DNA of 64,000 nucleotides, from the NCBI GenBank assembly GCA_010909165.1, contig MU008179.1:310001-374000 (forward strand), written 5' to 3'. Source of the DNA: Anthoceros angustus. Lineage: Eukaryota > Plantae > Anthocerotophyta. Positions 43,491 through 58,758 of this stretch are shown here, in pieces (position 1 is the stretch's first letter; each line of letters opens with the position of its first letter). A program made the translations under genes and the position numbers. The notes under the pieces are model-generated. The model worked only from the letters and a program-made list of their open reading frames with translations, was not told the origin of the DNA and ran no database searches.

Positions 43491-44634
43491 GACCGGTAAG
43501 CTATAATTATGACCAATGAACCCCCTTGCATTTAATTGAATTTCGATTTGAGCATGTTGTTAGCTCTAATGGCCCGATAACACGTTGTTTGTTCAGATGA
43601 ACACACACTTATAAGAACGCGTGTGTTTCAATCCTTACTCTTGCATCCAATTGCATCCTCCCCCTATCACTCCCTCTCGCTCCCTCCTACCTTAGGGTGT
43701 AGGTCGTTAAAAGTTTTTCTAATTTACTAAAATATACTTCAATTCAATCAAGGGTTATTTTACTACCTTAAGATAATCATCATAGAAAAACATCATCGAT
43801 ACTCTATGAATAAGTCTTAATCAAAGATCAGTCTTAATCAAAGATCATCATCAACCATAACTTACGGTTACACTAGTACTACCACCCCGCCATGGAAAGT
43901 CTGGACATAATCGAACTTCACACTTTTTCTGAAGGATAAAACACAATAACCAGGCCAAGGACGGCACTTGTGCGTACCCATGCCCCAGGAAATAGGCCAG
44001 ATAGAGCTGAGCCCGAGCTCCGCTTCCGAAAAATTCAACCAACGACCTGACGTAGCAAATGTCTGCTTCAGAGCTTCACACATCCACCTACTCTAGGTAC
44101 ACTCTCTGCAGCTACAAAATTACCACTATGCTAACCTGAGTATCTATAAACAGGGGAGAACAATATGACACATCTGCTGGTGGGTTCAGGAGCCGTCGTG
44201 TGGAATGGTGCCCACCTGCGACACTGTGTACATGCATGCGGTGACTTAACTCTACGCACAACTATGGCCGCTGCGGAGAAGGCAAAGTGCCTGTGACACT
44301 ACCCAGCACGCCTTTCCAAAACCAGATCTACGACAAAACCACTTGTATGTGGCAAGCCCGGGTTAGGTCACCGAAGGATTCCATTCGTTGCACAGTCGTT
44401 CCCACTGTGTATCAGGGCGGCAGCTCAGTAGCAACAGCACCCTGGTTGTGGCCTGCACACCACAGGGCGGGGAAATACAGCTCCGGATCTGCCGCAAACT
44501 TCAGGGGATGAGGCACCAAGTGGCCAGCCCGCCGCTATCCCTCCGCGGACGTGTTCCACACCCTTAGACGACTTGATTATTTGCTGTCCTCTGAGTTCGC
44601 TGCACGCCCATAGTATATGTCTTTGCAGAAGGCT

Positions 44635-45780
44635 CTACTGGATTACACAGGCGCAACTCTGGGATGCATCACAATCATCATCATCCATATCGGAATCCCC
44701 AGTTTCGCTGCCACGCCAAAATCACCAGAGCAAGTCAGTTAATCCAGCCTCGCACACGAATGACGAGTAATTTGGAGAAGGGTGCTACTGCTACTTGATG
44801 GCACATCCCAGCACAATTCATTCGCATGGCCAGAGCACTGGGATATATGATACACACACAGTGTGGTAGAATGGACAACCTTAACATGTAAAAAGAGCAG
44901 GACACAATGACAAAAGACAGCAGCAGCACAGCACAGCCTAGCAGCACTCCAACAGTGTAGAACAAATGCGTACACATCTCTGGGCGCAGCTAAACATGTT
45001 AGGATTAGTTGTCCAGAAATGTGCACACACAAAACACAGACATCTCAGGCCCCGTTCCCTCCTGTGCAATAAACCACAGCTGATGACTTCACACGGCTTG
45101 CCAGACAGTCAGATGCTCACCTAGCCTCGAATTCGTACACTTGGACCAACTCCAAGCCATGGCTGTCATTCCACTGGACAGTGCGCTTCACCAGCGGGTT
45201 GACATCACTTGCGCCAATTGAGTCTTCAGCATCCGCACCCCCAGCCGGGCCTGTAGCCTCCCTACCGTGACTGGTATCAGCTTCTGCAACCCGAGCTCCG
45301 CGCGATCCCTGACTGGCGGACTTGGCAGAGTGCAAGATTGACACGGGCTTCCGAGGAACTGCGGGCTGCGCCGGACGCTGAGGCACGTGACCATTCCCGG
45401 ATTGAACGGCATCCTGATCACTGACCTCCGAGGCTGGAGGCGGCGGAGACGCCGGCGGCAGGGGACCGAGGCGCCATGTCCGCATTCCCGGAGCCTGTGA
45501 AGGAACGGAGGTGTCCACCTTGAGAGGCCCTTCCCGGGAGGCAGCAGCAACACAACAACGAGGCGCACCCGATGGGCGCTCCTTGTCAGGCGCCAGCGAT
45601 GGCCGCTTTTCTCAGCCCCTGTCCGCCGGCTCGTGCTCCCTCACTCCTCCACACTCCCACCTCAGGCCCCTCTCATGGATGTGACGAAGGGTCCCGCTGC
45701 ACCTACACCTGCTACATGCGCCGCGTCCGAGCCAGGAAATGCGTCCGCCCCGGCCCCGGCCCCGCCAGCATCCCCGTTCC
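44635..45780 (-). CDS. Uncharacterised plant protein (At1g22790/At1g34010-like) with RVxW motif and C-terminal CaaX; 5' part frameshifted in this sequence
   Basis: Exon ending at 45121 (...KRTVQWNDSHGLELVQVYEFEA) splices GT-AG over 413 nt to exon 44707-44635 (SETGDSDMDDDDCDASQSCACVIQ*). The copy at ~49550 shows the upstream GCASLLCCCCP..GPLKVD motif. Family name is from memory; start codon uncertain. Confidence 0.65.
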
Positions 45781-47596
45781 CCGCTCACAAACCAGAACAC
45801 GCCGCCGATCCTCCCAAGACCTAACCACACCGGCATCGTCATGTCGGCCGCCACGCCTCCGCCCGCGGCCTCCCGTGGCGCCCTCCCCGTCTCTCCAGCA
45901 CCTCCATCCCTCCTGCACCTCCGCCCGGGCTCGCATCCCCGCCCCAGCCCTGACCTGCACAATCCCCGGCTCCTGCCAGCCTGGCCCCAGGGCCGCCACA
46001 AGTCAAGCTCACACCAAAATGCACTCCTACATCTCACTCACATCCTACGACCGCACGCACGCAGATCAGCAAGAAGCACAGCAGGAACAAACAACACCAG
46101 CTGCTCCCGCAAGCCAAGCTCCAGCACCAGCTCCGCAGCTCACCTCGGCTTCCGAATTCTCCCCGCAGCGGCACACAAGCATGAGACTGCCGAGCTCCGG
46201 CCGGGACTGGCCTCGCCGATCCGCCACGGAATGCACGCCGTCCGCTCCGCTGCTGGCAGCGGCGGGCCAAGAGAGAACAGCAAGCGCTGCGATACGGGAG
46301 ACAGAGCGGTGAGTCGCGACTCGCGACTCAAGCACGACTCGACTCGACTCACGACTCACGACTCACCTGCCGAAGAGGAAGGGGACGCAGGCGATGCAAC
46401 GGGCACAAGGGCCGGGAGCTGGGAAGGGGGAAGGAGCGACGAGGGAGGAGGGCAGGGGAAGGGGAGGGAAGGGAAGAGGGAGCTGTAGCGAGGAGATCGC
46501 GAAGCTGGGGCTTGGCTTGCCTGGAGCCGCTAGGGAGAGAGACACCGCGTGCGTGGAGCGTACCAAGAGAAACGACGACAGGGCAGACACAGGCCTGCTC
46601 GCTTGTGCCACGTCGGTTAAGCTTAACGCAATGTCCACAATGCCGTACGCCGTGGAGCTTAAGGGTAAGTTGGTAAGTGGACTAAAATAAACTTCTTCTT
46701 GGGTGGGCTATGCGCCCGGCCCCGATAGTATACCACGTGCTAGACAGACCTAAGTTTAGATAGACATACACTTGTTGCCCTTGGGTATCACCGGATTAAG
46801 TTATAGTAACTTTTAGTGTTAAAATTAATATTTTCTTAGACTTTAATATTTTTCAACATCTAAATATTACTGTGAAATTTATTAATTATTAAAATAATTT
46901 GATTATTATAAATTAATATTATAATATTTATCTCAATAAAATTAAACAGTTTTATATTATAATATTATTAAATAGATAGAAATAATATTTGAAGGTTATC
47001 CTTTAAGCAATGAACGATGTATACACTTAGCAAGTGATGTTAAAATTCAAGTAGAAACATGGGTGCAATCCGATGTATGTCTTATCTTATCTTTTTATGT
47101 CATAGATTGAAATTTAAGTGAAATGTCATAGACTGAAATTTAAGTGAATTTAGTCTGTAACCCATACTTTTGGATGTGCTACGACTCATGTAAGTCTCCA
47201 CCTTTGCTCCCCCCTACCTGCAATGTCGCAACAATTATAAGTTGTCATATAAATGACAAACCCACTCAAATTGGACTTCTGTGTATGCCAAAAGATAGAT
47301 TCTCTAAGAATATTTATTTTTAAATATTAAAACTATATATAATGATCCCCTTTAGAATCAATTTTTATATAATTAAATATTTTGGATATAATATTTCAAA
47401 AAATTAGCTAAACTACTAAAATAATTAGACCAGTGGTATCTATATCTAGTAATTTCTTAACTATTTTAAAATAAAAATTCCACACATCCTGATTAGAAGC
47501 ATGGAGAAAGTAGACTACTAATTTAAAGCTATACATAATCTATAAGGTTATTAATTTTCAAGGTGGTGTGACATTCATGTACCATTACCGACAACC

Positions 47597-47958
47597 ATGA
47601 CAAACTTGCAAAATTGTTCAAGAATATTATGATAATTGGGTTTCAATTATCTCTACTTGTACTTGCATGTATCCTTGAAGCGAAGGAGCTAGCGATTAAA
47701 CCCATGCAAGCATCGATCACACTCATGAGGCTCTTAGAGTGTCCATGCACCGTGATTCCGGACATAAAACACATGTGTCCTCCAGCGGAGGTTTGGATAT
47801 GCTCATGTGATGATTATCCGCGATCTAGATGTTTTAGAGATGAGGAAATGTCATACATGAGTGCTATGACTTGGACAATAGAGATTTTCTAGTAGCAAAC
47901 ATTCTGTAAATGTCCATTTGAATGCAATCTTTGTATACAAGAAGTAGTGGAGTCGTAA
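47597..47958 (+). pseudogene. Frameshifted duplicate of the Cys-rich secreted protein at 54359
   Basis: Near-identical to 54359-54730 with several small deletions. Lies in a duplicated AT-rich island (46690-49015 vs 53440-55800). Confidence 0.7.
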
Positions 47959-49014
47959 TATTTGCATTAGTGACATGTTCTAGAAAGTATAATTGAAGAG
48001 AGAGCATTTTATTCAAATCAATTTTGATATCCAAACTTTGGTTAACTATGAAAAATATTTTATAATATTTTATTTTAAAATAAATTTATTTTTATCAATC
48101 ATAACATTGGCATTATCTGATTTCAATATTCAAATCAGCTAATAAACATTTAAGATTCTTTAGGCTCGAGGTTTGGAAAGGTAGGAGGTTCTAAGGTACA
48201 AAGGAGACAACATCTTTCCACTACAAGAAACAAAGGAGACAACATTCAAGAATAAGACTCACCATGCAATCAGACAAGCGTTTAAGCAGACATTTAAGTT
48301 TTTACTACCAGTTAATACAAGTTTATTTATATCTATTTAAAATATCAATATTAATATTAATAAAAAATTTGACCAAAGTATCAAGGATCCATATGAGCTA
48401 TTAGATGGGCTCACCGCATCTCTCCTCTTTCAATAAGTAACCCTATATAAACTATTAAATAGTTTTTTTATTCACGAATTGGAATTTAAAGAGGAATTTG
48501 TTCCGTAATTGTAAGGAGGGTGTACCTTGGGCCACAATCTAGGAAGGCACTTAACAGGGCGTCTTCTTTGCATTGTTGGTTTGAATTGTCTAAGAAAACC
48601 TCATCAATATCTGACTAAGATACAAAGTATCCTATCTAGCTTGGTACTCCATTTCACTTGTTCTATGAGTTTTGGTGAATGCAACTTTTGTTTGCTCTGA
48701 ATGTTTCTCCACTTTCTGCTTTTAAAAACCTTTGTTGTGATATATGCTTGACTATAGGCAGGTTCTTTTGCATTTTCACTCCTTTCTGCTTTTAAAAACC
48801 TTTGTTGTGATATATGCTTGACTATAGGCAGGTTCTTTTGTATTTTCACTCCTTCTACAAGTAAATGGATAGATGTTTCAATTCCATGCAAGTGTGGGCT
48901 AGACCGTACCATAATCCGTTCGTTTTTAGGAACATCATATGGTCTTCAAATCTCCAATTCATCTACATTAGTTGAACACTTCAAATGGATAGTAATCCCA
49001 TCACTAACAAGAAA

Positions 49015-52000
49015 TGTGCACACACAAAACACAGACATCTCAGGCCCCGTTCCTCCTGTGCAATAAACCACAGCTGATGACTTCACACGGCTTGCCAGAC
49101 AGTCAGATGCTCACCTAGCCTCGAATTCGTACACTTGGACCAACTCCAAGCCATGGCTGTCATTCCACTGGACAGTGCGCTTCACCAGCAGGTTGACATC
49201 ACTTGCGCCAATTGAGTCTTCAGCATCCGCACCCCAGCCGGGCCTGTAGCCTCCCTACCGTGACTGGTATCAGCTTCTGCAACCCGAGCTCCGCGCGATC
49301 CCTGACTGGCGGACTTGGCAGAGTGCAAGATTGACACGGGCTTCCGAGGAACTGCGGGCTGCGCCGGACGCTGAGGCACGTGACCATTCCCGGATTGAAC
49401 GGCATCCTGATCACTGACCTCCGAGGCTGGAGGCGGCGGAGACGCCGGCGGCAGGGGGACCGAGGGCGCCATGTCCGCATTCCCGGAGCCTGTGAAGGAA
49501 CGGAGGGTGTCCACCTTGAGAGGCCCTTCCCCGGGAGGGCAGCAGCAACACAACAACGAGGCGCACCCGATGGGCGCTCCCTTGTCAGGCGCCAGCGATG
49601 GCCGCTTTTCTCAGCCCCCTGTCCGCCGGCTCGTGCTCCCTCACTCCTCCACACTCCCACCTCGAGCCCCTCTCATGGATGTGACGAAGGGTCCCGCTGC
49701 ACCTACACCTGCTACATGCGCCGCGTCCGAGCCAGGAAATGCGTCCGCCCCGGCCCCGGCCCCGCCAGCATCCCCGTTCCCCGCTCACACCAAACCAGAA
49801 CACGCCGCCGATCCTCCCAAGACCTAACCACACCGGCATCGTCATGTCGGCCGCCACGCCTCCGCCCGCGGCCTCCCGTGGCGCCCTCCCCCATCTCTCC
49901 AGCACCTCCATCCCCTCCTGCACCTCCGCCCCCATCCCCGCCCTGACCTGCACAATCCCCGGCTCCTGCCAGCCTGGCCCCAGGGCCGCCACAAGTCAAG
50001 CTCACACCAAAATGCACTCCTACATCTCACTCACATCCTACGACCGCACGCACGCAGATCAGCAAGAAGCACAGCAGGAACAAACAACACCAGCTGCTCC
50101 CGCAAACAAGCCAAGCTCCAGCACCAGCTCCCGCAGCTCACCTCGGCTTCCGAATTCTCCCCGCAGCGGCACACAAGCATGAGACTGCCGAGCTCCGGCC
50201 GGGACTGGCCCTCGCCGATCCGCCACGGAATGCACGCCGTCCGCTCCGCTGCTGGCAGCGGCGGGCCAGAGAACAGCAAGCGCTGCGATACGGGAGACAG
50301 AGCAGTGAGTCGCGACTCGCGACTCAAGCACGACTCACGACTCACGACTCACGACTCACGACTCACCTGCCGAAGGGGACGCAGGCGATGCAACGGGCAC
50401 AAGGGCCGGGAGCTGGGAAGGGAAGGAGCGACGAGGAGGAGGGAGGAAGGGAAGAGGGAGCTGTGGCGAGGAGATCGCGAAGCTGGGGGGCAGCTTGCCT
50501 GGAGCCGCTAGGAGAGAGACACCGTGCGTGGAGCGTACCAAGAGAAACGACGACAGGGCAGACACAGGCCTGCTCGCTTGTGCCACGTCGGTTAAGCTTA
50601 ACGCAATGTCCACAATGTCCTGAGCGGCAGCCTCTCTGTCCTGGTGCTCAGGTAGTGCGCCTCCACCTGCACTATCCAGCTCTCCACCAGCCTCTCTATC
50701 TCCTGGCGGAAGTCCTCTCCAGCACCTCCATCCCCTCCGCACCTCCGCCCCGGGCTCGCATCCCCGCCCCAGCCCCTGACCTGCACAATCCCCGGCTCCT
50801 GCCAGCCTGGCCCCAGGGCCGCCACAAGTCAAGCTCACACCAAAATGCACTCCTACATCTCACTCACATCCTACGACCGCACGCACGCAGATCAGCAAGA
50901 AGCACAGCAGGAACAAACAACACCAGCTGCTCCCCGCAAGCCAAGCTCCAGCACCAGCTCCCGCAGCTCACCTCGGCTTCCGAATTCTCCCCGCAGCGGC
51001 ACAAGCATGAGACTGCCGAGCTCCGGCCGGGACTGGCCCTCGCCGCTCCATATGCCGTTGCTCAACCAGGGTGATCCATTCGTACACTTGGACCAACTCC
51101 AAGCCATGGCTGTCATTCCACTGGACAGTGCGCTTCACCAGCAGGTTGACATCACTTGCGCCAATTGAGTCTTCAGCATCCGCACCCCAGCCGGGCCTGT
51201 AGCCTCCCTACCGTGACTGGTATCAGCTTCTGCAACCCGAGCTCCGCGCGATCCCTGACTGGCGGACTTGGCAGAGTGCAAGATTGACACGGGCTTCCGA
51301 GGAACTGCGGGCTGCGCCGGACGCTGAGGCACGTGACCATTCCCGGATTGAACGGCATCCTGATCACTGACCTCCGAGGCTGGAGGCGGAGACGCCGGCG
51401 GCGGCAGGGGACCGAGGCGCCATGTCCGCATTCCCGGAGCCTGTGAAGGAACGGAGGTGTCCACCTTGAGAGGCCCTTCCCGGGAGGCAGCAGCAACACA
51501 ACAACGAGGCGCACCCGATGGGCGCTCCTTGTCAGGCGCCAGCGATGGCCGCTTTTCTCAGCCCCTGTCCGCCGGCTCGTGCTCCCTCACTCCTCCACAC
51601 TCCCACCTCAGCCCCTCTCTCATGGATGTGACGAAGGGTCCCCCGCTGCACCTACACCTGCTACATGCGCCGCGTCCGAGCCAGGAAATGCGTCCGCCCC
51701 GGCCCCGGCCCCGCCAGCATCCCCGTTCCCCGCTCACAAACCAGAACACGCCGCCGATCCTCCCAAGACCTAACCACCGGCATCGTCATGTCGGCCGCCA
51801 CGCCTCCGCCGCGGCCTCCCGTGGCGCCCTCCCCGTCTCTCCAGCACCTCCATCCCCTCCGCACCTCCGCCCCGGGCTCGCATCCCCGCCCCAGCCCCTG
51901 ACCTGCACAATCCCCGGCTCCTGCCAGCCAGCCCCAGGGCCGCCACAAGTCAAGCTCACACCAAAATGCACTCCTACATCTCACTCACATCCTACGACCG

Positions 52001-53440
52001 CACGCACGCAGATCAGCAAGAAGCACAGCAGGAACAAACAACACCAGCTGCTCCCGCAAACAAGCCAAGCTCCAGCACCAGCTCCCGCAGCTCACCTCGG
52101 CTTCCGAATTCTCCCCGCAGCGGCACACAAGCATGAGACTGCCGAGCTCCGGCCGGGACTGGCCCTCGCCGATCCGCCACGGAATGCACGCCGTCCGCTC
52201 CGCTGCTGGCAGCGGCGGGCCAGAGAACAGCAAGCGCTGCGATACGGGAGACAGAGCAGTGAGTCGCGACTCGCGACTCAAGCACGACTCACGACTCACG
52301 ACTCACGACTCACGACTCACCTGCCGAAGAGGAAGGGGACGCAGGCGATGCAACGGGCACAAGGGCCGGGAGCTGGGAAGGAAGGAGCGACGAGGGCAGG
52401 GAAGGGAGGAAGGGAAGAGGAGCTGTGGCGAGGAGATCGCGAAGCTGGGGCAGCTTGCCTGGAGCCGCTAGGAGAGAGACACCGTGCGTGGAGCGTACCA
52501 AGAGAAACGACGACAGGGCAGACACAGGCCTGCTCGCTTGTGCCACGTCGGTTAAGCTTAACGCAATGTCCACAATGTCCTGAGCGGCAGCCTCTCTGTC
52601 CTGGTGCTCAGGTAGTGCGCCTCCACCTGCACTATCCAGCTCTCCACCAGCCTCTCTATCTCCTGGCGGAAGTCCTCTCCAGCACCTCCATCCCCTCCTG
52701 CACCTCCGCCTGGGCTCGCATCCCCGCCCCAGCCCTGACCTGCACAATCCCCGGCTCCTGCCAGCCTGGCCCCAGGGCCGCCACAAGTCAAGCTCACACC
52801 AAAATGCACTCCTACATCTCACTCACATCCTACGACCGCACGCACGCAGATCAGCAAGAAGCACAGCAGGAACAAACAACACCAGCTGCTCCCGCAAACA
52901 AGCCAAGCTCCAGCACCAGCTCCCAGCTCACCTCGGCTTCCGAATTCTCCCCGCAGCGGCACACAAGCATGAGACTGCCGAGCTCCCGGCGGGACTGGCC
53001 CTCGCCGATCCGCCACGGAATGCACGCCGTCCGCTCCGCTGCTGGCAGCGGCGGGCCAAGAGAGAACAGCAAGCGCTGCGATACGGGAGACAGAGCAGTG
53101 AGTCGCGACTCGCGACTCAAGCACGACTCGACTCACGACTCACGACTCACGACTCACCTGCCGAAGAGGAAGGGGACGCAGGCGATGCAACGGGCACAAG
53201 GGCCGGGAGCTGGGAAGGGAAGGAGCGACGAGGGAGGAGGGCAGGGAAGGGAGGAAGGAGCTGTGGCGAGGAGATCGCGAAGCTGGGGCAGCTTGCCTGG
53301 AGCCGCTAGGAGAGAGACACCGTGCGTGGAGCGTACCAAGAGAAACGACGACAGGGCAGACACAGGCCTGCTCGCTTGTGCCACGTCGGTTAAGCAACGC
53401 AATGTCCACAATGCCGTACGCCGTGGAGCTTAAGGGTAAG
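49015..53440. repeat. Mosaic of partial copies of 45015-46690 interleaved with fragments of 56173-56298 and 56632-56681
   Basis: Direct sequence comparison; all junctions fall on 9-10 bp microhomologies. Confidence 0.88.
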
Positions 53441-54358
53441 TTGGTAAGTGGACTAAAATAAACTTCTTCTTGGGTGGGCTATGCGCCCCGATAGTATACC
53501 ACGTGCTAGACAGACCTAAGTTTAGATAGACATACACTTGTTGCCCTTGGGTATCACCGGATTAAGTTATAGTAACTTTTAGTGTTAAAATTAATATTTT
53601 CTTAGACTTTAATATTTTCAACATCTAAATATTACTGTGAATTTATTAATTATTAAAATAATTTGATTATTATAAATTAATATTATAATATTTTATCTCA
53701 ATAAAATTAAACAGTTTTATATTATAATATTATTAAAATAGATAGAAATAATATTTGAAGGTTATCCTTTAAGCAATGAACGATGTATACACTTAGCAAG
53801 TGATGTTAAAATTCAAGTAGAAACATGGGTGCAATCCGATGTATGTCTTATCTTATCTTTTTATGTCATAGATTGAAATTTAAGTGAAATGTCATAGACT
53901 GAAATTTAAGTGAATTTAGTCTGTAACCCATACTTTTTGGATGTGCTACGACTCATGTAAGTCTCCACCTTTGCTCCCCCCTACCTGCAATGTCGCAACA
54001 ATTATAAGTTGTCATATAAATGACAAACCCACTCAAATTGGACTTCTGTGTATGCCAAAAGATAGATTCTCTAAGAATATTTATTTTTAAATATTAAAAC
54101 TATATATAATGATCCCCTTTAGAATCAATTTTATATAATTAAATATTTTGGATATAATATTTCAAAAATTAGCTAAACTACTAAAATAATTAGATTGGTA
54201 TCTATATCTAGTAATTTCTTAACTATTTTAAAATAAAAATTCCACACATCCTGATTAGAAGCATGGAGAAAGTAGACTACTAATTTAAAGCTATACATAA
54301 TCTATAAGGTTATTAATTTTCAAGGTGGTGTGACATTCATGTACCATTACTGACAACC

Positions 54359-54730
54359 ATGACAAACTTGCAAAAATTGTTCAAGAATATTATGATAATT
54401 GGGTTTCAATTATCTCTACTTGTACTTGCATGTATCCTTGAAGCGAAGGAGCTAGCAGTTAAACCCATGCAAGCATCAGATCACACTCGCGAGACTGTCT
54501 TAGAGTGTCCATGCACCGTGATTCCAGACATAAAGAAACACATGTGTCCTCCAGCGGAGGTTTGGATATGCTCATGTGATGATTATCCGCGATCTAGATG
54601 TTTTAGAGATGAGGAAATGTCATACGCAAGGTGCTATGACTTGGACAATAGAGATTTTCTAGTAGCAAACATTCGCTGTAAATGTCCATTTGAATGCAAT
54701 CTTTGTATACAAGAAGTAGTGGAGTCGTAA
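54359..54730 (+). CDS. Putative secreted cysteine-rich protein, 123 aa, intronless
   Basis: Hydrophobic N-terminus IMIIGFQLSLLVLACILEA, 11 Cys in the predicted mature part with three CxC motifs, TATA-like ctataag ~55 bp upstream, open frame within AT-rich DNA. Confidence 0.6.
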   Translation: MTNLQKLFKNIMIIGFQLSLLVLACILEAKELAVKPMQASDHTRETVLECPCTVIPDIKKHMCPPAEVWICSCDDYPRSRCFRDEEMSYARCYDLDNRDFLVANIRCKCPFECNLCIQEVVES

Positions 54731-55498
54731 TATTTGCATTAGTGACATGTTCTAGAAAGTATAATTGAAGAGAGAGCATTTTATTCAAATCAATTTTGAT
54801 ATCCAAACTTTGGTTAACTATGAAAAATATTTTATAATATTTTATTTTAAAATAAATTTATTTTTATCAATCATAACATTGGCATTATCTGATTTCAATA
54901 TTCAAATCAGCTAATAAACATTTAAGATTCTTTAGGCTCGAGGTTTGGAAAGGTAGGAGGTTCTAAGGTACAAAGGAGACAACATCTTTCCACTACAAGA
55001 AACAAAGGAGACAACATTCGAAGAATAAGACTCACCATGCAATCAGACAAACGTTTAAGCAGACATTTAAGTTTTTTACTACCAGTTAATACAAGTTTAT
55101 TTATATCTATTTAAAATATCAATATTAATATTAATAAAAAAATTTGACCAAAGTATCAAGGATCCATATGAGCTATTAGATGGGCTCACCGCATCTCTCC
55201 TCTTTCAATAAGTAACCCTATATAAACTATTAAATAGTTTTTTTATTCACGAATTGGAATTTAAAGAGGAATTTGTTCCGTAATTGTAAGGAGGGTGTAC
55301 CTTGGGCCACAATCTAGGAAGGCACTTAACAGGGCGTCTTCTTTGCATTGTTGGTTTGAATTGTCTAAGAAAACCTCATCAATATGCGAACTGTCTAAGA
55401 TACCTGCGAAAGTATCCTATCTAGCTTGGTACTCCATTTTCACTTGTTCTATGAGTTTTGGTGAATGCAACTTTTGTTTGCTCTGAATGTTTCTCCAC

Positions 55499-55640
55499 TT
55501 TCTGCTTTTAAAAACCTTTGTTGTGATATATGCTTGACTATAGGCAGGTTCTTTTGCATTTTCACTCCTTTCTGCTTTTAAAAACCTTTGTTGTGATATA
55601 TGCTTGACTATAGGCAGGTTCTTTTGTATTTTCACTCCTT
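55499..55640 (+). repeat. 70-bp direct repeat x2 (also at ~48717-48855)
   Basis: tctgcttttaaaaacctttgttgtgatatatgcttgactataggcaggttcttttg at 55501 and 55571. Confidence 0.92.
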
Positions 55641-55932
55641 CTACAAGTAAATGGATAGATGTTTCAATTCCATGCAAGTGTGGGCTAGACCGTACCATAA
55701 TCCGTTCGTTTTTAGGAACATCATATGGTCTTCAAATCTCCAATTCATCTACATTAGTTGAACACTTCAAATGGATAGTAATCCCATCACTAACAAGAAA
55801 TGTGGAGATGATGTCCATGCTAAGGTTGCAACAACCCCTTAGTATGTGGCAAATTGCCAACCATAACATGTTGGCAGAATTGGGCGCATGGGAACAAACA
55901 GACGAGGCCGATTCCTGGATTGTGGCCAGCGC

Positions 55933-58758
55933 TCAACCCAAACCCTCGTCTCGATGCATTTGGGCAGCTTGTTCCATCTGCCGTGCCTCAAGGTGCTGAG
56001 TGTGCCTGCGCTCCACGGTGGCAAGCCAACCATCCATCTGCTCCTGAATAGCCTGTTGCAGGCTGACAGGGTCGTCAGCACCAGACAGGGGCACACCAGG
56101 CTGCTCCTCTCCGCCTGCTGCGCCTTGTGAAGAGGACGTGGGGTCACGTGAGTCTATCCAGCTTTCCATTTGGTCCACAATGTCCTGAGCGGCAGCCTTT
56201 ATTCTCTCTCTGTCCTGGTGCTCAGAGTAGTGCGCCTCCACCTGCACTATCCAGCTCTCCACCAGCCTCTCTATCTCCTGGCGGAAGTCCTCTCCAGCCA
56301 GAGGTTGCCCAGATCTTGTTGGCTCTTCCGCCACCTGTTGCTCTATCGTCCGAATCCACCTTTCCACTTCCTGTTCAATCTCTTTCCGAATGGATTCGGG
56401 GTCAGGTCTCTCGGGTTCTGGAGCGGGTGCTGGCTTGGGCTTCTTCCTTTTCTTGGGTTTGACGGGTGGCTTGGGCGTCTCGGGTCTCCCGGCCCAATGT
56501 TGTTCAGCAGCAGCACCGGCAGCAGCAGCGTCGCTGACAGGAGTCATGAGAAAGTCGAGCAAACTCTGGCTGGGCTCTGCATTGGATTGGTCGGAGACCA
56601 CAGCCTCCGTTATCATCAACGCGCCCATCTCCCCTCGCCGCTCCATATGCCGTTGCTCAACCAGGGTGATCCATTCGTACATCTGATCCTCAACGTCTTC
56701 TCCTATAGCTCTTTTCAGCTCCTTCTCCTTCTTGGCAGATTTGATTTTATCGCCCACTTCCTGGTCCATGGAATCATGGTTAGCCCCGTTGAGATGACAC
56801 AAGGAGAGACGTGTGTCTGCCTGCCGACGCACAGGAGAGAACGTGCCTGCAATAGTTTAAGCAGCTTTTTCTTGCACTTGGCCAGAGTCTCTGTTCGCGA
56901 GTCCGGCGCCTCCTGCAGTAACATTGCGGTGACGGTGCACTTCCAGTTGTCAGTCCAGAATCCAATGCCCAACAGACATGGATCACACGATCTGCCACAA
57001 GGAACGAGATAACTCACCCCCCAGTCTTCCATCATGATCTTGTCAGCTAGCCGCTTTGTGCCTGCGAGCATGTTGATGAGGTTTCCCGAATGCCTGGGCA
57101 CTCTGGGGGCAGACATGCGATCCAGCAAGCCTATAACCCTGCCTGTTCCCTTCACTGCTGCCATGAGTGTAGGGGCGAACAAGGGCCCACGTCTGCGGTT
57201 CTCTATGTGCAAAACCTCGTTCATGACATGAATGCCCGGGATGTTTTGCCTCAACATAGCCCTCTGCAACGGTACCTTGGATCAGGCTCCATAACCTCCG
57301 GGACAGGCAAGGATGAAATGACCAATCTTTTCTTACTTGAGTAGCAGTGAGGGTGGTGTTGCATTCCACGTCCATAATCTGCCTGTACATCTGCTCATAG
57401 TACTGTGTCCGCTTTTCCTGTTCCAGAAGCTGCATAAACAACTCCTTCATGGTAGGTTGGTTGAAGGTATCTCGTATCTTAGCGATCTCCACATTCATTT
57501 CCGCCATCTCTGCTTTGGAATCCGCTGTCTGCAATCATCCAACGACAGGGCTTAAGACCAGCTGCAGCTGTTCCCCTGTTAAAACAAGACATGAAAAGGG
57601 CATGGCGAGCGAGGATCTACTTTTTTATCGTGATGGAAGCGGATTTCTGAGTATCGGCCAGCCAAGAGGATCTGTTAAGCAACAGTGTCGGTAACAATGC
57701 ATGAGAAGAGCGCGGGGCTGGGAGCCATCCCCGCAACAGCAATATGACGGTAAAGAAAGAAAAGCACGGAGGCAAGAAAGCACAAGACTCACCTACTTCG
57801 TCAAGCTCGTACTTGGATTGAGTCCGTGCCCTTTCAGCATCATGGTAGAAAAACCGGAGATTCTTGAGGTGTCTTCCTTTGGTTTTCAACACCTTCTCGT
57901 AGTTCGCCATCTGCAGTGCCACCGCATGGTTACTCGTGGAGCAAATGACAGGCATATCGTGCCAGCTGCTCACACATGAGTGTGACCCATGAATCCTCGT
58001 CCAGAAATCATACCATGACTTCAAAGGCAGCCCTCTCCCGACGCATCGGGGTGACAGTTGCAGTATAGCTTTTCCGCAACGCCTTGGAGGCCCGTATCCT
58101 GTTCTGTATCAAGGAAATATGCGCCTCCATTCTGTAAAGAGCACTTCTGTCTTGCACAATTCCCCTGAGGTCAAGTTGCGCGGCCTTGGCGTTGCTAATC
58201 TGCTTGTCCAGCTGCGCACCCAACAGAAACATCAATCACGAAGATGGCGCCACAAAACAAGTACGCTGCCAAATCAGCATGACCCCACACAGAAAACCCA
58301 GGTCTCAAGCTTCTTCGGATCCACCTCTATCTGCTTGAGCAGCACCAAATTCTTCTGGTCGTCGGAAATCCGCCGCAGAAACTTCACCCTCTCCACGTGC
58401 CTCTGCATGTCGCTCACGCGGAAGGAAGCCTTGTCCGCAAACAGCAGCGCGTCCAGCGCTGCCCTGAGTTGCCTGTTCTCCACCTTGGCAGCTCGTATCT
58501 TGGTCCGATTCCTCTCCATCTCGATCTCCGCGGCTTCATGGTAAGCCTTCCCACACACCCCTGCCCGACAACGCACACCCACAAGGCCCCTTCTGTCAAT
58601 GCCATGGCCCCCAAATCGAGCGGGCGGCGGGAGAACGGAGCCCCGGGAAAAAATATCATACCCAAGCGCGAGAAATTAAACTCCAAATCAAGCGTCCGAT
58701 CCCTGGCAATGGCAGCTGCCCTGGCAGCTCCCCCGGCCGCGCCTGTGGGAGCATTCAT
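55933..58758 (-). CDS. Ciliary coiled-coil protein, CCDC151/CCDC114 (outer-dynein-arm docking complex) family-like, with a low-complexity C-terminal extension; multi-exon
   Basis: Exon peptides KAYHEAAEIEMERNRTKIRAAKVENRQLRAAL, IQNRIRASKALRKSYTATVTPMRRERAAFE, LKNLRFFYHDAERARTQSKYELDE and IAKIRDTFNQPTMKELFMQLLEQEK align by eye, in order, with remembered CCDC151/ODA1-type segments. Confidence 0.55.

Follow-up and report, generated by a model that had tools for sequence, protein, structure and literature searches.

PP1 specificity stems from regulatory subunits, and to our knowledge very few such subunits are known in plants, with SBG1 added only in 2026. A small gene on the minus strand of a 64,000-nucleotide stretch of the Anthoceros angustus genome (GenBank assembly GCA_010909165.1, contig MU008179.1, positions 310,001 to 374,000; hereafter the window, numbered from its first letter) raises the question as to whether land plants possess a type of protein phosphatase 1 (PP1) subunit that docks the enzyme through a long, animal-type segment and holds it at a membrane through a lipid. 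The gene is expressed as spliced RNA, and its sequence motifs are conserved in an orthologue. PP1 binding, lipidation, membrane location and any effect on phosphatase activity we infer from the sequence and from structural modelling. On balance we favour, at a probability of roughly 0.55, a protein of about 143 residues, predicted to be disordered, that docks PP1 (TOPP in plants), is farnesylated at its C-terminus and would thereby hold PP1 at a membrane.

The gene is spliced and expressed

An earlier interpretation made from the letters alone (the sequence-only reading) had spliced two pieces by hand into a protein with the C-terminus CACVIQ*. We compared window positions 44300-46800 (2,501 letters) with contigs of four public runs, whose label as RNA is a guess. 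Run X1 is nearly identical to the window and defines organism A; the other three, from different studies, are about 93% identical to it and define organism B. The proposed splice proved exact: the joint 44707<->45121 is present in contigs of all four runs and both organisms, and it removes 413 nt whose borders read CT..AC in plus-strand orientation and hence GT..AG in that of the gene. Since the contigs lack introns and these have canonical borders, the contigs derive from spliced RNA. Spliced contigs have depths of 70-500; a low-depth X1 contig over 44680-45150 is unspliced, retains the intron and is identical to the window.

The main coding part lies at the end of exon 2 (45121..46286, minus strand), behind a GC-rich leader of about 800 nt. 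Its 3' end at 45121 translates as ...KRTVQWNDSHGLELVQVYEFEA, and the same exon reads ...SDVNPLVKRTVQWNDSHGLELVQVYEFEA before the gtgagc donor (boundary letters ...GAG GCT AG|gtgagc). Intron 2 (44708..45120, minus; 413 nt, GT..AG, phase 2) closes with the acceptor ...gtggcag| adjacent to 44707; the codon divided by it, AG|C, encodes Ser, and translation continues as ETGDSDMDDDDCDASQSCACVIQ to the stop at 44637-44635. The coding part of the last exon (44635..44707, minus) comprises an acidic tract, ETGDSDMDDDDCDAS, followed by QSCACVIQ and the stop, and the predicted product has 119 + 1 + 23 = 143 residues. The last exon had been noted as absent from the list of open reading frames (ORFs), which is correct, because its frame has no start giving at least 20 codons; its sole ATG gives 17.

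An orthologue shares the architecture

A HMMER search of 1.84 billion representative proteins returned one cluster, P0001 (E 2.9e-11, 42% identity). P0001 corresponds to an ORF that continues past the donor site; it lies on L001 (SRR33208241), a 4.9-kb contig from a third organism. Another member of the cluster, P0002 (called as 163 aa), derives from L121 (SRR33208242), a 1.4-kb contig in which the intron of about 417 nt seen in L001 is missing; that intron has the same position and phase as that of the window gene. This naturally spliced orthologue was used for full-length queries. It consists of KRSVQWNDIHGKELAQVWEFEAS, an acidic tract and SCTCVIQ*; the counterpart of the last-exon acidic tract and tail is DSGESDDDEDGESSRSCTCVIQ, and P0002 itself ends in ...GKRSVQWNDIHGKELAQVWEFEASDSGESDDDEDGESSRSCTCVIQ. 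The blocks conserved between the two proteins are NGH; KP(L)VSILH..KSA...RGA.V; KR[TS]VQWND.HG.EL.QV.EFEAS; the acidic tract; and SC.CVIQ*. Both the docking segment discussed below and the C-x-CVIQ ending are therefore kept at 42% overall identity, as the conservation check suggested by the sequence-only reading called for.

Wider searches added little. A Pfam scan of the coding exon gave no family at E up to 10, a word-index protein search with the exon gave nothing, and a two-sequence profile and, separately, the orthologue's C-terminal region retrieved no sequence other than P0001 among 5.8 billion clusters. No angiosperm protein matched in the HMMER or word searches. The nearest entries in the ESM Atlas are unnamed Streptophyta hypothetical clusters of 107-161 aa at 0.91-0.92, a level that shuffled proteins reach in 4-10% of cases. 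Relatives were thus found in only three closely allied organisms; the sequence-only reading had spoken of a plant family, and while an orthologue does exist, that wording was too broad.

The docking segment resembles those of glycogen-targeting subunits

The sequence-only reading had seen a PP1-docking motif in KRTVQW and, in its continuation D..GL.L..V..F, a likeness to glycogen-targeting PP1 subunits. RTVQW fits the looser RVxF form [RK]x(0,1)[VI]{P}[FW]. A second looser form is [KRL][KRSTAMVHNQ][VI]{FIMYDP}[FW], and RTVQW fits this as well. For the continuation, two crystal structures allow a comparison residue by residue. In PP1:GM, 65-RVSF-68 occupies the RVxF pocket, Asp70 makes a salt bridge to PP1 Arg261, Leu76 is the lid of the PhiR pocket, Val79-Lys80 are the PhiPhi residues on strand beta14, and Phe82 sits in a pocket by Pro298 that is opened by rotation of Arg74; the 12-residue insert from RVxF to PhiPhi is the longest known (PMC6235537). 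In PP1:PTG, the grooves are filled by Val85, Phe87, Leu95, His99 and Phe101, while Asp89 pairs with PP1 Arg261 and Lys83 with PP1 Asp166 (PMC9582199).

The predicted docking segment of the window protein, KRTVQWNDSHGLELVQVYEF (45129..45188, minus), presents the same series of an RVxF-type motif, an Asp, a lid Leu, a PhiPhi pair and a Phe. Counting from the aromatic residue of the RVxF motif as position 0, it has Val at -2 (PTG Val85), Trp at 0 (GM Phe68, PTG Phe87), Asp at +2 (GM Asp70, PTG Asp89), Leu at +6 (PTG Leu93), Leu at +8 (GM Leu76, PTG Leu95), Val at +11 (GM Val79, PTG I98), Tyr at +12 (GM K80; PTG His99, which stacks on Tyr78) and Phe at +14 (GM Phe82, PTG Phe101). At these positions the orthologue has V, W, D, K, L, V, W and F. 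The spacing from RVxF to PhiPhi is 12 residues, the same as in GM, and the positions that match the structures are those conserved in the orthologue, save +6 (Leu here, Lys there). The proposed likeness to glycogen-targeting subunits thus extends to both the positions and the spacing of the contacts seen in GM and PTG.

About 55 residues upstream of the RVxF-type motif lies VSILH (45330..45344, minus), likewise conserved in the orthologue. The SILK consensus, (G/S)IL(K/R), occurs upstream of RVxF in about one tenth of RVxF proteins (PMC12109034), and judging by its letters VSILH is a weak variant of it.

A CaaX box closes the conserved frame

The protein ends in CVIQ (44638..44649, minus), with a further Cys two residues upstream (44655-44653), and the sequence-only reading had proposed CVIQ as a farnesylation CaaX box. 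GFP-BD-CVIQ was the best tested substrate of Arabidopsis protein farnesyltransferase (PFT), with a relative kcat/Km of 1.0 compared with 0.60 for CVIM, 0.21 for CVII and 0.06 for CVIL, and CVIQ was poor with Arabidopsis PGGT1 (relative kcat/Km 0.07) (PMC3017772). The Cys stands four from the C-terminus, and PFT accepts the residues at a2 and X. Both CVIQ and the Cys two upstream are identical in the orthologue, and the residue between the two Cys varies (A or T). Loose CaaX-like ends are common in the 64-kb window, with 28 by chance, and we give the box weight only because it closes a spliced, conserved reading frame. The CVIQ Cys is likely farnesylated, and the Cys two upstream is a possible site of S-acylation.

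A modelled complex places the protein in the PP1 grooves

Modelling with PP1, named as a check by the sequence-only reading, was carried out with a PP1 chain taken from a metagenome contig, located by a degenerate DNA pattern for GEFDNAGAMM. The chain chosen (L004 411..1403(-), 330 residues) matches PP1alpha chains at E ~1e-204; PP1alpha numbering, used here, equals L004 numbering plus 2 (L004 D62 = D64). The modelled pair consisted of PP1 residues 1-301 and 77 residues of the window protein (45123-45353, minus; RKPVSILH...EFEA), so that the acidic tail lies outside the modelled segment. The complex scored 0.92 in each of three runs and 0.00-0.01 in three controls. At least 85% of contacts agree between runs, and the partner has a predicted local distance difference test (pLDDT) score of 56-58. 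Of 78 solved complexes 51 attain the score mark, as do 2 of 108 mismatched pairs.

Confident contacts are predicted for partner residues 2-8 (KPVSILH), 56-62 (KRTVQWN), 65 (H) and 67-77 (LELVQVYEFEA). On the PP1 side, the modelled contacts at 53-59, 114-117, 119 and 166-169 correspond to the published SILK groove, those at 242-243, 261 and 288-299 to the RVxF groove and beta14, and those at 74 and 78 to the second groove (PhiPhi/Arg74). The metal-binding active-site residues of PP1 lie outside the interface in the model, and because of this we read the window protein as a candidate targeting subunit rather than a pure inhibitor.

In the arrangement we propose, VSILH would occupy the SILK groove and R-T-V-Q-W would fill the RVxF groove, with Asp+2 pairing with PP1 Arg261. 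The next eight residues would form a turn of the G-subunit type with Leu+8 as its lid, V-Y would extend beta-strand 14 as the PhiPhi pair, and Phe+14 would enter the Arg74/Pro298 pocket. Just 24 residues further on, past the acidic, Ser/Thr-rich tract, the Cys of CVIQ would carry a farnesyl group, and the Cys two upstream perhaps an acyl group.

Several points weigh against this arrangement. The strict RVxF form, [KR][KR][VI]x[FW] (PMC12109034), does not describe the motif, in which Thr stands directly before Val (K-R-T-V-Q-W), so that the sequence-only assignment of KRTVQW holds for the looser forms and fails for the strict one. The orthologue likewise has Ser before Val (K-R-S-V-Q-W), and in both species the Lys position of SILK, reported as its main determinant, is His. 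Neither the HMMER nor the PDB sequence searches link the segment to any PPP1R3 protein or PDB chain: a 46-aa piece gave chance matches only (chromoshadow domains, E ~1), and the 24-aa motif and the two-sequence profile gave nothing. Conservation rests on two or three related species. Many membrane-anchored CaaX proteins have a polybasic second signal, whereas here an acidic tract lies beside the CaaX box. As to the model, the PP1 chain is not this plant's own, the predictor is uncalibrated for disordered peptides, and its score may reflect memory of the solved complexes of PP1 with GM, GL, PTG and I-2, in which case it would express likeness only.

In one alternative the gene encodes a small farnesylated protein with a conserved block devoted to some other partner or fold, the resemblance to PP1 motifs being coincidental. 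RVxF-like strings are frequent in proteomes, and this speaks for the alternative together with the departure from the strict consensus, the missing Lys of SILH, the failure of HMMER to connect the protein to any PP1 regulator and the uncalibrated predictor. It accounts poorly, however, for nine groove and salt-bridge positions over 20 residues that match two crystal structures with exact spacing, for the coincidence of these positions with those conserved between orthologues, and for the near-zero scores of the controls. We therefore regard a chance resemblance as unlikely and retain docking to PP1 as the favoured explanation.

Comparison with known PP1 regulators

The PPP1R3 proteins (GM, GL, PTG/R5 and R6, and the fungal Gac1-type subunits) have the same anchoring segment of RVxF, Asp+2, an eight-residue turn, a Leu lid, PhiPhi and Phe+14, and their binding mode is the one predicted for the window protein. 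The latter nevertheless falls outside the PPP1R3 family, as it lacks a CBM21 domain, for which the 24 residues after the segment leave no room. Sequence homology to PPP1R3 is undetectable in the PDB searches and in HMMER. The window protein also differs in having Trp for Phe, Thr before Val and a C-terminal CaaX box, and its SILK-like motif lies upstream of the segment, in contrast to the SALK of PTG, which lies downstream.

Among plant proteins the closest analogue, by motifs and size and not by aligned sequences, appears to be SBG1 (SUBER GENE1, AT1G52565), a protein of 129 aa with no domain that binds TOPPs via SILK and RVxF and inhibits TOPP2 (PMC13652734). SBG1 and SBG1L1-3 are of the same size class and equally domain-less, and their order of SILK upstream of RVxF fits that of the motifs in the window protein. 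The two motifs are about 17 residues apart in SBG1 (C46/L47, V63/F65), compared with about 55 in the window protein, which has SILH. SBG1 is presented as an inhibitor, with a C-terminus that lies over the active site, and farnesylation is unmentioned in the paper describing it (PMC13652734). Inhibitor-2 (I-2; AtI-2) is disordered and, like the window protein, has SILK upstream of an RVxF-type motif (PMC12109034), but it differs in having an active-site-blocking helix and no lipid anchor, and we found no sequence similarity between the two. With regard to the C-terminus, TIMAP (PPP1R16B) and MYPT3 (PPP1R16A) of animals are reported to be prenylated, membrane-associated PP1 regulators with a C-terminal CaaX box (PMC6737228, PMC3560227). 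These are large ankyrin-repeat proteins of the MYPT family, and the window protein has neither repeats nor a domain, so that the likeness is functional only.

The precedents of SBG1 and Inhibitor-2 suggest that the protein might bind PP1 mainly as an inhibitor or chaperone, its CaaX box being unused or serving another purpose. Size class and motif order are those of SBG1, which does inhibit a TOPP, and the acidic tail was not part of the modelled segment, leaving room for a contact between tail and PP1. The modelled interface, on the other hand, has no active-site contacts, the docking segment belongs to the targeting (G-subunit) type, and C-x-CVIQ is identical in the orthologue while its neighbours vary, which argues that the box is used. 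On this evidence we consider a mainly inhibitory role quite unlikely and prefer that of a membrane-held targeting subunit.

A literature search for a prenylated plant PP1 regulator found none. It is tempting, though at somewhat under even odds only tentative, to regard the window protein as the first prenyl-anchored plant PP1 targeting subunit, combining a minimal module of the G-subunit type (RVxF, Greek-key turn, PhiPhi and Phe) with a farnesyl/acyl anchor and a motif resembling SILK. In that case, a docking module known from opisthokont glycogen-targeting subunits would either be far older than its fusion to CBM21 or have arisen twice, and a land plant would possess this long animal-type module without a carbohydrate-binding domain, as a minimal membrane-tethered anchor for PP1. 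Such a protein would offer a simple handle on the role of PP1 at plant membranes, since mutants of its motif and CaaX box are straightforward to design, with a generality limited by its apparent restriction to one lineage.

The gene sits at the edge of a repeat mosaic

A six-frame scan of the window with the extended docking pattern found only three copies of the motif exon, each of them minus-strand (45129-45185, 49123-49179 and 51076-51132). They belong to a mosaic that extends from 45015 to 56681, the motif exon occurring three times in 10 kb of it. In self-comparison, unit U1 (45015-46642) is 95% identical to U2 (49010-50617), part of U1 (45131-46642) is 96% identical to U3 (51078-52577), and 45891-49018 is 97% identical to 52675-55804. 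U2 (49010..50617, minus) comprises exon 1, exon 2 and the start of the intron; U3 (51078..52577, minus) breaks off within the motif (..VQVYE|W) at a rearrangement junction. Pieces of 56173-56298 recur at 50608-50723 and 52568-52683, and 51037-51086 equals 56632-56681. The last exon and 3' untranslated region (UTR), at 43900-45015, occur just once in the window, next to U1 and to neither other copy. Where the copies diverge, it is mostly by single-base indels in G/C runs. The assembled U2 and U3 are each one G short in a G-run, which puts the motif out of frame with the start, and the frame of U1 across this run matches the orthologue; because of this agreement we take U1 together with the last exon to be the gene. 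The additional copies may be real, young duplicates or rearrangements, or they may be assembly artefacts. Upstream of the gene lies an AT-richer segment of 2.4 kb without long ORFs (46642-49018), which has a 97% identical duplicate at 53413-55804.

Homopolymer errors also appear to affect the start of the coding sequence. In all four runs a G (plus strand) missing from the window follows 45460, and another follows 45469; X1 and X2 have a further one behind 45539, and the X1 contig has 11 letters more than the window across 45121-45775 (655 nt), located in G/C runs wherever listed. As assembled, the frame starts at an ATG at 45485-45483 and the N-terminus reads MRTWRLGPLPP; with the two extra bases, an ATG at 45477-45475 (acATGGCG) comes into frame and the N-terminus becomes MAPSVPLPPASPPPP... 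(MAPSVPLPP). The start codon region (45475..45485, minus) was assigned from the RNA contigs, copy U2, which contains both extra bases in the assembly, and the orthologue. The orthologue begins MAPSVPLPE, and for this reason we take the start in the RNA contigs as the real version. The window assembly thus probably has homopolymer deletions in 45121-45775 that put the true start out of frame. A longer ORF extending upstream was rejected, because its frame is interrupted by stops both in the window and in L001 and no ATG precedes MAPS. Neither the triplication nor these indels, nor the upstream SILK-like motif, had figured in the sequence-only reading.

That U1 is a decaying duplicate or an assembly artefact in a rearranged repeat, and not a functional gene, might be suspected from the triplicated exon, the frame-broken or truncated state of U2 and U3 and the 11 letters inserted in the RNA contigs, but this is highly improbable given that U1 alone adjoins the single-copy last exon, the unspliced X1 contig over 44680-45150 matches exactly, spliced contigs occur at depths above 100, most differences between the copies are homopolymer indels of the kind that read errors produce, and the frame of U1 over the G-run agrees with the orthologue.

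Non-coding parts of the transcript

Exon 1 is 5' non-coding (46367..46533, minus; the part covered by X1 contigs) and is separated from exon 2 by an 80-nt GT..AG intron (46287-46366, minus; joint 46286<->46367). The extent of exon 2 was pieced together from contigs covering 45121-45775 (X1), 45121-45967 and 46143-46320 (X2) and 46143-46290 (X1), with additional pieces within 46143-46365; no single organism A contig spans the whole exon. A first gene model, with an acceptor at about 45493 and a short exon, was dropped because contigs continue through that site. At the other end, the 3' UTR of about 700 nt (43930..44634, minus, end approximate) is defined by X1 record 1 (783 nt) and X5 record 12, which extend 330-370 nt past 44300.

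Within the leader, an island of about 60 nt (window ~45555-45625, minus; L001 ~2735-2795) is conserved between the orthologues with the pattern CAATCGCTGGCG.CTG..AAGGGAGCGCCC.TCGGGTGC.CC...TGTTGCTG. The rest of the leader is not alignable between the orthologues, whose proteins are 42% identical. In L001, the reading frame stays open over about 45 codons ahead of the ATG and contains no ATG there. The island could be a regulatory RNA element or part of a non-AUG N-terminal extension. The organism B contig X2 lacks leader positions 45968-46142 (175 nt) and has 5 other letters there; with non-canonical borders (GG..CA), this gap is better explained by an indel between the species than by an intron. 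Finally, the leader contains an upstream ORF, MLVCRCGENSEAEVSCGAGAGAWLAGAAGVVCSCCASC*, at 46066-46182 (minus), which is found in every repeat copy, at about 50059, 50892, 52013 and 52851.

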